A stretch of 64,000 nucleotides of DNA from the NCBI RefSeq assembly GCF_001194135.2, contig NC_068992.1, positions 27,939,195 to 28,003,194 of the forward strand, given 5' to 3'. Shown in pieces: positions 29,418-33,280 of the stretch; within the stretch, counting starts at the first letter, position 1; the number at the start of each line of letters is the position of its first letter. The DNA comes from Octopus bimaculoides. Its lineage: Eukaryota. The notes under the pieces were generated by a model. It saw nothing but the letters and a program-made list of their open reading frames with translations, had not been told where the DNA came from and ran no database searches. Both the position numbers and the translations under genes were made by a program.

Positions 29418-30018
29418 ACTTATAGTATGAGCCTTTTATGCTGATGTTGGCTAAATAATGTCATTTTTAACAGAAAAGTAATTAAGATAGTCATGCATTC
29501 AATGTCTTCTATTGATAAAGATCAGAAATATTCCAAAACTTACTAAAGTTCACATCCAAAGAAAAACAAGGAAAAGTTGAAATTTCCTAATATATAAAGA
29601 TGTGGAGAGAAAGAAAATTCATTTAAAACTTATCAGTTTTAGACAATTAAGGTAGGATTGAGCCAAAAAAAAAAAAAAAAATTTTTATACTGAATTTGAA
29701 GAGAAAAGTGAATTCCACCAGGACTTCTCTTGGAGTTTGCACAGCTAACCCCTGCATTAGCAAGTAAAATGACCTCAAACGGTTTTGGAGAATTCTNNNN
29801 NNNNNNNNNNNNNNNNNNNNNNNNNNNNNNNNNNNNNNNNNNNNNNNNNNNNNNNNNNNNNNNNNNNNNNNNNNNNNNNNNNNNNNNNNNNNNNNNNNNN
29901 NNNNNNNNNNNNNNNNNNNNNNNNNNNNNNNNNNNNNNNNNNNNNNNNNNNNNNNNNNNNTTGGATTGTCCATATTTTAAACTGATTTAAAAAGAAAAAT
30001 TCGATAAATTAACCAAAG
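29418..30018 (-). repeat. Left arm of the inverted repeat pair flanking the flipped NSUN5 exons (contains N-gap 29797-29960)
   Basis: Reverse complement of 32534-33224 on both sides of the gap, with scattered substitutions and a ~40 bp indel. Confidence 0.92.
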
Positions 30019-30022
30019 AATT

Positions 30023-30176
30023 CATCATCATCATCATCATCGTTTAACGTCCGCTTTCCATGCTAGCATGGGTTGGACGATTTGACTGAGGACTGGTGAA
30101 ACCAGATGGCTACACCAGGCTCCAATCTGATTTGGCAGAGTTTCTACAGCTGGATGCCCTTCCTAACACCAACCAC
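30023..30176 (-). mobile_element. RTE 3'-tail-derived short element (representative copy)
   Basis: Nearly identical to the 3' end at 7586-7760; related, more diverged copies at about 2490-2680, 4140-4380, 16490-17010, 20890-21070, 23050-23165, 28195-28345, 29000-29120, 30955-31390, 34490-34720 and 49180-49330. Confidence 0.85.
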
Positions 30177-30400
30177 ATGTAGAATACAAATTCACAAAAA
30201 TTTTCTCAAAATTCCCCAAAATAAAAGTTACGAGGGGTTACATGGCATGCTTAAAGCAGAATTCCGCCAAAGTCCTCTGTTCTCTATATTTGTGCCCTCA
30301 CTTTCCAAAGATATACATCATCAAAACAGCTGTCATTCTTTGTAGTTTTGAAAAAAAAGATTGTATTTAGAGATAAACTAAAACGTGATTGAGATCATAC

Positions 30401-30579
30401 CTGATCCAGTACATGATGGATCTACCAGAATGAATTCCACATCTTTAAATCGACAGTCAGCAGGATCTAGCCTCATAAAATCACCAAAGATAGTTTCAAC
30501 AATTCCACTGCCTGTCTTTGCAATGAAATGTTTTAAAGTCTCCATTCGACGTGCATCCCTTTCAATAGCATAAATTTTT
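30401..30579 (-). CDS. NSUN5: NSUN5 exon carrying motif IV (DPSC), inverted relative to the rest of the gene
   Basis: Minus strand tggcAG| KIYAIERDARRMETLKHFIAKTGSGIVETIFGDFMRLDPADCRFKDVEFILVDPSCTGS g|GTatga; 179 nt, phase 2-1. Confidence 0.93.
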
Positions 30580-30956
30580 CTGCCAAATGAAGAATATATG
30601 CAAATCAAATAAACAAAGTTAAAAGAGAGTTGCAAGTTAAAGCTACTTCATAAATGTAATTTGTACTAAATTTGTTTTATTTCATATCCTAATTTCCCAT
30701 AAGTGGTAAACTATAGCCAAACAACAAATATGTGTTTCACTATTTTAAATAAAAAGATTTTGTGCTGATATGTTTTAATTCTGTAGCATTTAAACCAACC
30801 TTATTCAGCCCAAATATTCTACCTGTTCTATATTCAAACTAGCCAGATCCAGCCTCTCACACTTTTCCTACCAATGTCATTAAAAAAAGTAAACAATCTC
30901 ATCAATACAATTGTGAAGCTACATGCTAATGTATGATTAATTCAAAACAATTGCTG

Positions 30957-31225
30957 CCATGCAAAAAAGGACCTGTGCTACTTCCACATTAAAAAGCACC
31001 CATGCTGGTGCCACATTAAAAAGCACCCATGCTGGTGCCACATTAAAAAGCACCCATGCTAGCACCATGTATAAAGCATTTCTGCTGGTACCATGTATAA
31101 AGCATTTCTGCTGGTACCATGTATAAAGCATTTCTGCTGGTTCCACATAAAAAGCACTTGTATTGGTGCCACATGTAAAGCACCCATGCTGGTTCTTCAC
31201 ATAAAGCTGGTGCCATGTAAAAACG
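30957..31225. repeat. 26-27 bp minisatellite inside an RTE-tail element
   Basis: ccacattaaaaagcacccatgctggtg x3 and ccatgtataaagcatttctgctggta x3, plus diverged flanking units. Confidence 0.85.
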
Positions 31226-31757
31226 TACCCAGTACACTCTGTAAAGTAGTTGGTATTAGGAAAGATATCCATCCATAAAGACGATGCCAAAACAGACAAG
31301 TGGAGCCTGGTGGAGTTCTCTGGCTTGCCAGCTTCTGTCAAACCAACCAAGCCATGCCAACATGGAAAACAGATGCTAAATGATAATGATGACATTTGAC
31401 AGAGTATTCTCAATGCATTGGTTTCATTTCTATTCATTTAATTCTTTTAGAAAAACAAAAAAAAATCAAGACTAAAACTGTTGGTAGCTTAATGGAATGA
31501 TTAGAGATAAAATGATTCGACCAATCTAGTGAATTGGTAGAATTATTAAAGTGCCAGATCAGATGCCTGGCAGTTTTTATTCCTGTTATTTGATTCTGAG
31601 TTCAAGCTTGCTGTGGTCTACTGACCACCATAGAATTCAAAGAAGGAAGAGGAAGGGGAGAAGAATTGGTGGTGAGACTTTATTTCAGTTTATTTTATGG
31701 AAGAAATTTCCATTAAATGCTATTGTGAAAAGATTAGACAAAAATAATTCTTCTTAC

Positions 31758-31873
31758 CCAACATTATTCATCAAAGCGGCAAGATGAGTAGTTTTGTTCC
31801 CTGGAGCAGCACAGCAGTCAATAACACAGCTCCCCTCAGTGGGTGACAAAACATAAGCAGGGAAGCAACTGGC
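31758..31873 (-). CDS. NSUN5: NSUN5 exon carrying SAM-binding motif I, inverted relative to the rest of the gene
   Basis: Minus strand ttttgtAG| [38 protein letters not shown] gg|GTaag; 116 nt, phase 0-2. Confidence 0.93.
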
Positions 31874-32295
31874 CTACAAAAAATAAAATAAAAATAAAAA
31901 CACAAGTAAAACAATATTTGAGGAAGTAAGACTATTCGAAAACTTTTTAACAAAGACAAAAGCAACAGCTAACAATTCTGCCATAGTTTGCCTTAGTTTA
32001 TATATTTCCAGTAATAATGGATTCAAATTTTGGCAGAAGGTCCATAGTTTAGGGGAGGGGCTTAATTACATCGACTCTTCCATCCTATCTCATTGTATAG
32101 ATGGTTACATTGGACCAATTGTGTTCAATTTACTCTGCATTTATCCTCCTCCCTTCTAAAGCCTGTCACCACCCTGATTACACCAACAAACTTATTTGTT
32201 TTCTTTTACAGATATTCAGCCTCTATCACCACTCTAGCCACTGAGTCACATATATTTCTGTCACCTCCTAACCATCTAAGCTAGGTTGCCTTTAA

Positions 32296-32515
32296 CCCTT
32301 TAGCATTCACATTATTTTGTCAAATGTAATGCTTATTTATTTACATTGATTTGAAATGATCATGTATTATCTTGCAACTTTGAGATTTCAATGATGTGAT
32401 TGTATAGTTTTACAATGACATTCTTAGGTAGGTGCAAGAGGCCAGATCTGGTCAGTTTGAACATAAAGCAGGAAAAAAATTTGGGGCTAGAGATGGCTTG
32501 TTTAAATACCAAGGG
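32296..32515. mobile_element. piggyBac-type MITE, 220 bp
   Basis: TTAA|CCCTTTAGCATT...AAGGG|TTAA. Confidence 0.8.
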
Positions 32516-32533
32516 TTAATATACATATAGTTA

Positions 32534-33280
32534 CTTTGGTTAATTTATCGAATTTTTTCTTTTTAAATCAGTTTAAAATATGGACAATCCAAATTTTGGG
32601 CTTAAATCCCAGCAATAAACTGTTAAAAATATTTATGGAGAGAAAGATATTGAAAAACATCAATACATCAGATTGACAAACGAACGAGGAGGGTATGAGG
32701 TGATTATGAGACGTGCTAAAAATAACAGCTAAATAGGCCTTAAATCAGGCACCAAAATTTCTTTGCTATTTTCGTTTTTACATAATCGTATGAATTCCTA
32801 CGTGTTGAACACAAATTCACAAAAATTTTCTGAAAATTCTAAAAAATAAGAAAAGTTTTGAGGAGTTATATGGCTTGCATAAAGCAGATTTCTCCAAAAC
32901 CTTTTGAGGTCATTTTACTTGCTAATGCAGGAAAGTCCTTTCTCTTCAAATTCAGTATAAACATTTAAAAATTTTTTGGCTCAATCCTACCTTAATTGTC
33001 TAAAACTGATAAGTTTTAAATGAATTTTCTTTCTCTCCACATCTTTATATATTAGGAAATTCCAACTTTTCCTCGTTTTTCTTTGGATGTGGACTTTAGT
33101 AAGTTTTGGAATATTTCTGATCTTTATCAATAGAAGACATTGAATGCATGACTATCTTAATTATTTTTCTGTTATAAATGACATTATTTAGCCAACATCA
33201 GCATAAAAAGCTCATACTATAAGTCTAAATTCATTAAAAATAAATTAAAATTTGCGTTAAAATTCGATAAAGCAATTACC
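32534..33280 (+). repeat. Right arm of the inverted pair; appears to be a complete element with imperfect TIRs
   Basis: Matches the left arm over 32534-33224; own ends ggttaatttatcgaatttt (32538) and aaaattcgataaagcaattacc (33280) are imperfect inverted repeats. Confidence 0.85.

Follow-up and report, generated by a model that had tools for sequence, protein, structure and literature searches.

Two catalytic NSUN5 exons inverted between repeat arms: a probable orientation error in the assembly

Why do two catalytic exons of an otherwise collinear gene point the wrong way? The 64-kb window, that is, the whole stretch of DNA analysed here, contains a gene for NSUN5 (NOL1/NOP2/Sun family member 5, an RNA cytosine-C5 methyltransferase) whose coding direction is the + strand, with the motif I and motif IV exons alone on the - strand. 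Exon 1 (17558-17656, +) begins with ATG and supplies 33 codons, ending in phase 0 before a gtaagt donor that starts at 17657. Exon 2 (21735-21923, +) encodes NKKKLYALV...RRFK, and together with exon 3 (23662-23770, +; end phase 1) it matches the NSUN5-specific N-terminal domain (Pfam PF21153, NSUN5_N) over positions 1-83 of 88 with an E-value of 2.4e-13. Exon 5 (26820-26961, +) runs up to LLVFPAGSEFHEHPLYLSGEIVLQEK and ends in phase 0. The terminal exon (35024-35403, +) carries motif VI, with VYSTCS, and closes with the stop codon at 35401-35403. The motif I exon (31873-31758; 116 nt, entry phase 0) and the motif IV exon with DPSCTGS (30579-30401; 179 nt, phase 2 in, phase 1 out) are both read on the - strand.

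The two flipped exons have the properties of working coding sequence. Joined to each other on the - strand, they are free of stops through ...FILVDPSCTGS. Their acceptor contexts end in ttttttgtAG and catttggcAG, and their donors begin with GTaaga and GTatga. The top match of their 98-aa product is human NSUN5 (PDB 2b9e, E 2.5e-28). A tblastn search detected a single copy of each exon in the window, in - orientation. The pair has no + strand duplicate there, and the single gap that lies beside them, 164 N long, is too short to hold them.

Turning the cassette around restores the gene. Exon 5, 31873-31758, 30579-30401 and 35024-35403 then form a 271-aa open frame up to the stop, with phases that chain as 0, 116 nt, 2, 179 nt, 1 and with canonical splice sites throughout. 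The protein predicted from the flipped join aligns without a gap to residues 51-301 of human NSUN5 (2b9e_A; 251 residues, E 8.4e-70). It also covers positions 1-198 of 199 of the RsmB/F methyltransferase domain (Pfam PF01189, gapless, E 3.3e-31), which in the assembled orientation is divided over both strands. Motif I and VDPSCTGSG in the - strand exons and VYSTCSV in the terminal exon align to the same motifs of 2b9e; we take the catalytic cysteines to be those of motif IV (D-P-S-C) and motif VI (T-C-S), and motif I to bind SAM. Omission of the cassette from NSUN5 splicing leads to a stop two codons later. The visible coding sequence, 1214 bases in all, is free of stops and frameshifts and keeps every splice site. 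The first-pass annotation had described the two exons as lying on the - strand within a + strand gene, as regaining a continuous frame when 30019-32533 is flipped, as free of decay, and as so placed that skipping the cassette would destroy the enzyme. The coordinates, splice sites, phases and computed joins given above bear this description out.

The unique segment 30019-32533 (2.5 kb) is bracketed by inverted repeat copies at 29418-30018 and 32534-33224. The left arm consists of an outer part (29418-29796, +), which aligns to 33224-32886 (-), and an inner end (29961-30018, +), which is 98% identical to 32592-32534 (-) and has one homopolymer of unequal length. Between them lies a gap of 164 N (29797-29960), the sole link of the upstream + strand exons to the cassette. 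The right arm (32534-33224, -) is complete at 691 nt and joins both the cassette and the downstream flank without a gap. Within the outer arms, 29418-29670 pairs with 33224-32972 (253 nt, 98%) and 29751-29796 with 32931-32886 (96%). This similarity is far above chance, and both the inverted copies of one element and the gap in the left arm had been recognised correctly at first reading. Over 339 aligned bases, the outer arms show 15 substitutions (about 4%) and 3 indels; the whole arms are separated by four indel events. The arms are old, because such a level of substitution and four indels have accumulated between the copies. In appearance they are indel-bearing, decaying members of an ordinary dispersed repeat, and they are interrupted or adjoined by other mobile elements. 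No convincing case of short target-site duplications was found at the arm ends.

On either side of the N-run at 29797-29960 the sequence matches the right arm; both matches are inverted, and they follow the expected order. The part of the right arm that joins the inner and outer ends, 32593-32885, has no left counterpart and measures 293 nt, against 164 N in the left-arm gap. The two sides of the left arm thus fit a single uninterrupted repeat copy, some 130 nt longer than the length of the N-run would imply. The gap is intronic, and no reading frame crosses it.

A contig from a related species bears on the age of the arms. This contig (L001; Logan SRR11869391, 1054 nt) spans the motif IV exon, the adjoining intron and the inner arm end, of which it covers 85 nt before it ends. 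The arm next to the motif IV exon predates the species split, because the start of the arm is present in the relative. The arm of L001 is 88-90% identical to its counterpart in the window and the intron 82.5%; the arms of the window are 96-98% identical to each other. The arm that neighbours the motif IV exon follows that exon alike in either orientation of the cassette, and L001 fits both. Homology searches of sequence collections with the two-exon peptide (best 83% identity) and with the NSUN5 terminal exon (best 41% identity) yielded no sequence from the same species. Ten ORFs of the window, one of which crosses the left outer junction, had no exact match in the collection.

Other repeats lie within and beside the cassette. 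Next to where the left arm ends on the cassette side lies a young SINE copy (30022-30176, -), which is 97% identical to 7756-7602, has many older copies, and is missing at the orthologous site of L001. An old partial copy of the arm element (30175-30264, +; 82%) is inverted relative to the left arm and is also found in L001. The right end of the cassette holds Rep2 (32206-32526, +), a dispersed repeat with TTAA-flanked inverted ends, further copies of which are located at 48674-48984, 62021-62250, 23309-23516, 30768-30951 and 2147-2315. Apart from NSUN5 itself, the open segments of at least 85 aa that were scanned with Pfam between 16 and 42 kb matched only the N-terminal part of a Helitron and, weakly, OTU.

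The end of Rep2 provides a marker for the points of exchange. A 36-nt copy of this end, motif M (29378-29413, +), lies directly outside the left arm, and the last 36 nt of Rep2 itself form motif M' (32491-32525). M and M', the latter read on the - strand, are 92% identical with 3 differences in 36 bases, and they have common bases that are absent from the five other Rep2 copies compared. The pair is inverted in the assembly; flipping the cassette turns it into a direct duplication on either side of the left arm. This pattern places the putative breakpoints of the flip inside the repeat arms, which is the expected site of a repeat-induced orientation error.

We consider it very probable that the assembler mis-oriented 30019-32533 and that the true NSUN5 gene is collinear and intact. 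Either the flip took place long after the arms arose or it does not exist, because the arms are old yet the coding sequence is intact. Frameshifts would be expected in a gene broken for so long; under neutral decay since the divergence of the arms, the rough probability of an intact coding sequence is about 0.001. Short-read scaffolds are classically prone to orientation errors where inverted repeats flank a small segment. The proposed sequence of events starts from a repeat of about 0.7 kb whose middle, about 290 nt, is sequenced in one copy only. If this core were near-identical in both copies, short reads could not assign the outer flanks to the ends of the segment. Both orientations of the cassette would then fit the assembly graph, and the scaffolder would pick one. 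Gap closing would get across the right-hand repeat and fail on the left, leaving the 164-N gap. Correction of the orientation would return NSUN5 to a collinear and intact state. The inferred step is that the orientation picked is incorrect. Base composition points weakly in the same direction. The non-exonic cassette has an AT skew of +0.045 and a GC skew of -0.075, the mirror image of the flanking introns (-0.047 and +0.052); this test is weak (p 0.28 for AT, 0.03 for GC), with the direction expected of a flipped cassette.

The assembly is visibly incomplete in this region. The window contains six N-runs, an NSUN5 exon is absent, and the exons next to it have incompatible phases. Exons 3 and 5 cannot be joined in frame, as exon 3 ends in phase 1 and exon 5 requires two preceding bases. 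The ferredoxin-like domain of NSUN5 (PF21148) is matched at positions 40-78 of 78 only, and regular expressions and tblastn on both strands of the window detected no exon for positions 1-39 ('RVNTLK'-type). The absent exon, which would carry the first half of the domain, is probably hidden in the 454-N gap at 25730-26183; it is predicted to run from phase 1 to phase 2, with a length of 1 mod 3.

An orientation error of this kind makes particular demands. One gap-free stretch, 29961-35870, contains both the flipped - strand exons and the terminal exon on the + strand, and a flip of that whole contig cannot repair NSUN5, because the terminal exon within it is already on the + strand. The artefact would have to combine a wrong path through the right arm with a wrong scaffold link at the gap. 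It counts against an artefact that the wrong path falls within apparently contiguous sequence, which goes beyond the mere mis-orientation of a contig. In principle, the difference of about 4% between the outer arms could also be resolved with paired reads spanning about 300-400 nt. Moreover, the sequence evidence listed so far is equally expected from a very recent real inversion.

Such a real inversion is the second explanation, and we regard it as improbable. Non-allelic homologous recombination between pre-existing inverted arms would have turned the cassette in the germ line. The sequenced animal would then carry a null NSUN5 allele, perhaps heterozygous and polymorphic in the species. The inverted arms with up to 98% identity, the breakpoints that M and M' place within them, the intact exons expected of a young allele, and the gap-free assembly of the right junction are all in keeping with this history. 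Several model organisms also tolerate being without NSUN5. The prior is low, as few inverted-repeat pairs of such size are polymorphic inversions, and here a conserved enzyme is destroyed. It is also rare for one sequenced individual to carry an inversion between repeats of 0.7 kb that breaks a gene. The region also bears the marks of unresolved assembly, with a gap in one arm and an absent exon. The mutual identity of the arms, 96-98% against 88-90% to the relative's orthologue, would fit gene conversion and ongoing exchange; it is explained equally well by a duplication after the species split. An extension of the same idea, slightly less probable still, is that the cassette flips recurrently between gene-converted arms, with ON (collinear) and OFF (inverted) alleles of NSUN5 present in the population or in a mosaic animal.

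The first-pass annotation had ranked mis-assembly as likeliest and had left room for a polymorphic or somatically invertible cassette. The ranking of mis-assembly first and real inversion second holds up: it fits the arm-internal breakpoints, the gapless alignment after the flip, old arms beside an intact coding sequence, and the absent exon. The somatic ON/OFF cassette did not gain support, since no recombinase domain was detected in the open segments scanned at 16-42 kb.

It is highly improbable that the inversion is old and was born together with its arms in one replication-based dupINVdup event, with NSUN5 a pseudogene ever since. In this class of rearrangement, A-B-C-D-E becomes A-B-D'-C'-B'-D-E (PMC5338099). 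The assembled order of upstream sequence, M, inverted arm, inverted cassette ending in M', arm and flank corresponds to it when B is M, C is the cassette and D is the arm. The duplicates, however, have diverged (15/339 plus four indel events in the arms, 3/36 between M and M'), and all 1214 visible coding bases are intact. An old inversion concurrent with the arms is rejected on the rough decay estimate given above. The same junctions would also result from a harmless event, in which an inverted arm copy inserted with a 36-nt target duplication into a collinear gene.

Least probable is a programmed or somatic switch in which site-specific or recurrent homologous recombination sets NSUN5 ON or OFF: its appeal is architectural, with exons essential for catalysis placed between inverted repeats and a frameshift when they are skipped, but the arms look like a decaying dispersed repeat among mobile elements, and a Pfam scan of open segments of at least 85 aa between 16 and 42 kb, which would miss shorter or intron-split genes, detected no recombinase, integrase or transposase domain. 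We know of no animal precedent for the inversion of an exon cassette as a means of gene control.

The consequences differ between these explanations. If the flip is an artefact, it matters for annotation only: gene predictors will break or truncate NSUN5 here, and claims of NSUN5 loss or of odd isoforms from this assembly would be wrong, due to the flip and to the exon lost in a gap. If the inversion is real, recombination between intronic repeats would have produced a naturally occurring null allele of this conserved rRNA methyltransferase, a kind of structural variant that is useful and not unprecedented. A programmed flip alone would be remarkable, and nothing here points that way.

Four known systems offer a comparison. 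In the programmed switches that bacteria and phages operate by DNA inversion (Hin, Gin, Fim, shufflons), as here, the orientation of a segment flanked by inverted repeats would decide the product. Those switches use short specific sites and an adjacent dedicated recombinase, neither of which was found here, and the host in the present case is an animal genome with introns. The dupINVdup class (PMC5338099) shares the layout M - arm' - cassette' - M' - arm. It differs in that the duplicates here have accumulated changes beside an intact coding sequence, which speaks against an inversion as old as the duplications; the sizes (36 nt and 0.69 kb) are also tiny relative to the human cases.

The arms of the human F8 inversions are about 9.5 kb long. 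The arms described here are 0.7 kb, less alike, and both intronic in the same gene, and one orientation is known. The resemblance to the F8 intron 22 and intron 1 inversions (mentioned in PMC7507428), which arise by recombination between inverted repeats, lies in a pair of such repeats, one or both intronic, that would recombine and turn exons around, and in a gene that would be abolished with its exons intact.

Orientation errors of short-read assembly provide the last comparison. The locus departs from them in its gap-free right boundary and in outer arms that are about 4% different, so that the ambiguity rests on an unsequenced core of about 290 nt. It resembles them in its unique 2.5-kb segment, its inverted repeat copies and a gap in one copy. 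Both orientations would fit the graph, and the gene content is sensible only in the orientation opposite to the assembled one.

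NSUN5 is an intron-rich gene on the + strand of the window, a 64-kb AT-rich draft sequence (37% G+C) broken by six N-runs. Exon 1 (17558-17656), exon 2 (21735-21923), exon 3 (23662-23770), exon 5 (26820-26961) and the terminal exon (35024-35403) all lie on this strand. By Pfam, exons 2-3 encode the NSUN5 N-terminal domain, and exon 5 encodes the second half of the NSUN5 ferredoxin-like domain. The exons for motif I (31873-31758, 116 nt) and motif IV (DPSCTGS; 30579-30401, 179 nt) are on the - strand, inside a cassette at 30019-32533. The first-pass description of them is borne out, and the AG acceptor and GT donor of each are canonical. 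tblastn found no second copy of either in the window. The top match of their joint product among solved structures is human NSUN5 (2b9e, E 2.5e-28). When the cassette is flipped, exon 5, the two - strand exons and the terminal exon form a single open frame to the stop, with the phase chain claimed earlier (0, 116 nt, 2, 179 nt, 1). The 271-residue collinear product aligns to 2b9e_A 51-301 as one gapless stretch of equal length (E 8.4e-70) and covers positions 1-198 of 199 in the Pfam RsmB/F profile. Skipping the cassette destroys the frame, also as claimed, with a stop after two codons. Together, the open frame, the phases, the gapless alignment and the nearly complete profile match indicate that the - strand exons were made for the collinear order and were in collinear use until recently.

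The cassette had been described as bracketed by inverted copies of one element, the left copy with a gap, and the arm alignment bears this out. The right arm spans 32534-33224 (691 nt), and the left arm runs from 29418 to 29796 and, after 164 N, from 29961 to 30018. The two gap flanks match the right arm in the correct order, both of them inverted, and the interval opposite the gap measures 293 nt (32593-32885), so the flanks are compatible with one continuous copy, which would exceed the N-run by about 130 nt. The outer arm parts differ by 15 substitutions in 339 aligned positions and by three indels; the inner 59 nt hold a single difference, one of run length. Since the gap is intronic, no reading frame crosses it. 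It is the sole join between the exon 5 stretch (26184-29796) and the cassette stretch, which are connected here by scaffolding and not by sequence. At 30175-30264, beside the inner end of the arm, there is an old, incomplete and inverted copy of the arm element (82%), and this fold-back layout is conserved in a relative's contig (L001, 829-945). Inverted intronic repeats bracketing exons favour back-splicing to circular RNA, exon skipping and long double-stranded RNA editable by ADAR. The collinear gene would have two ~0.7-kb repeats of this kind around two exons totalling 295 nt.

The right end of the cassette is a copy (32206-32526) of Rep2, a dispersed repeat of ~230-320 nt with TTAA-flanked inverted ends (TTAACCC...GGGTTAA). 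Other copies lie at 48674-48984, 62021-62250, 23309-23516, 30768-30951 and 2147-2315; judged by its ends only, the family looks like a piggyBac-type miniature element. The final 36 nt of the cassette copy (M', 32491-32525) recur inverted just outside the left arm (M, 29378-29413) with 92% identity. Two features, the preceding TGTATA and the string CAAGCCATCT, are common to M and M' but absent from the five other Rep2 copies compared, which makes M and M' copies of one locus rather than independent repeat ends. As assembled, M lies outside the left arm and M' inside the right arm, mutually inverted; with 30019-32533 flipped, they stand in direct orientation on either side of the left arm, resembling an insertion's target duplication. 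This layout puts the exchange points of the flip within the arms, as expected both of arm-arm recombination and of an assembler leaving a collapsed repeat by the wrong path. In the collinear gene, M and M' look like an unusually long target duplication, or they may show where a template switch re-entered after placing the inverted arm copy 2.5 kb upstream of its source.

The flipped cassette is quite probably an assembly mis-orientation rather than a biological feature, and this reading, preferred by the first-pass annotation, is kept as the likeliest. In favour of an error, a gap lies inside the left arm, the inner and outer arm ends are linked solely by its unsequenced core, and the window holds six gaps. 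So does the outright absence of a further NSUN5 exon: the phase-1 end of exon 3 does not fit exon 5, which needs two bases ahead of it. The Pfam NSUN5_fdxn-like profile is matched at 40-78 of 78 only, and an exon for positions 1-39 has no match on either strand of the window. The assembled sequence between 23771 and 26819 thus lacks one exon, and the gap at 25730-26183 is its likely hiding place. Small segments between inverted repeats are commonly mis-oriented in short-read scaffolds, and it is rare for one sequenced animal to carry a gene-destroying inversion between repeats of 0.7 kb. What speaks against an error is that one gap-free stretch (29961-35870) holds both the - strand exons and the + strand terminal exon: a flipped contig alone would not suffice, and the right arm must also have been walked wrongly. 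The outer arm parts also differ enough for good paired reads to resolve them.

A real, recent inversion of the cassette is unlikely. Its exchange points fall where recombination between the arms would put them, but base rates and the assembly defects favour error. The window's own features fit a very recent inversion and an orientation error equally. No same-species sequence was found in the collections; the sole close sequence, L001, comes from another species (Logan contig of 1054 nt, SRR11869391) and has 82.5% nucleotide identity across the motif IV exon and its introns. It extends from this exon across the old inverted fragment of the arm element and reaches the arm's inner end, so the motif IV-side arm predates the species split. 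Only 85 nt of the arm are covered before the contig ends, and it does not discriminate orientation, since in either one the motif IV exon is followed by the arm identically. The window arms are 96-98% alike, versus 88-90% for either against the relative's copy; either the second arm arose later by local duplication, or sequence is exchanged between the arms. A SINE at 30022-30176, absent from the orthologous site in L001, is 97% identical to a copy 22 kb off (7602-7756), and its family seems to have been recently active. At least a dozen older SINE copies lie in the window.

The alternative of a programmed ON/OFF cassette is without support, as open segments of at least 85 aa in 16-42 kb hold no recombinase, integrase or transposase domain. 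The arms, which have a SINE and a second mobile element directly beside them, are copies of an ordinary repeat in decay. The only domain matches in that scan are a Helitron helicase-like N-terminal fragment (38622-38954, - strand, E 3.3e-24) and, at 37268-37573 within 37137-37573 on the + strand, a weak match to an OTU protease (E 5.5e-04, below the Pfam cut-off). They adjoin gaps (35871-36387 and 39348-40053), and a Helitron-type element probably left both behind. Inside the cassette, a tandem array at 30964-31207 (26-27-nt units, about 8 copies, 82-91% matches) adjoins a SINE-like segment (31220-31400). An intron-less ORF of 377 aa on the - strand (47188-48318) contains an F-box domain (Pfam F-box-like, E 2.2e-07) and probably represents a genuine neighbouring gene.

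Non-exonic skews in the cassette (30019-32533; AT +0.045, GC -0.075) are opposite to those in the other NSUN5 introns (17657-29417; AT -0.047, GC +0.052); this suggests the - strand as the cassette's long-term transcribed strand, although four windows make it statistically weak. Between the duplicates, divergence amounts to about 4% for substitutions and 1% for indel events; half those rates would put about six indels in the 1214 coding bases. These bases are intact (rough P about 0.001), and an inversion born together with the arms is rejected. If real, the flip would be much younger than the arms. The assembled order of M, inverted arm, inverted cassette ending in M', and arm has the layout of the dupINVdup class, in which an inversion is flanked by two inverted duplications (PMC5338099).
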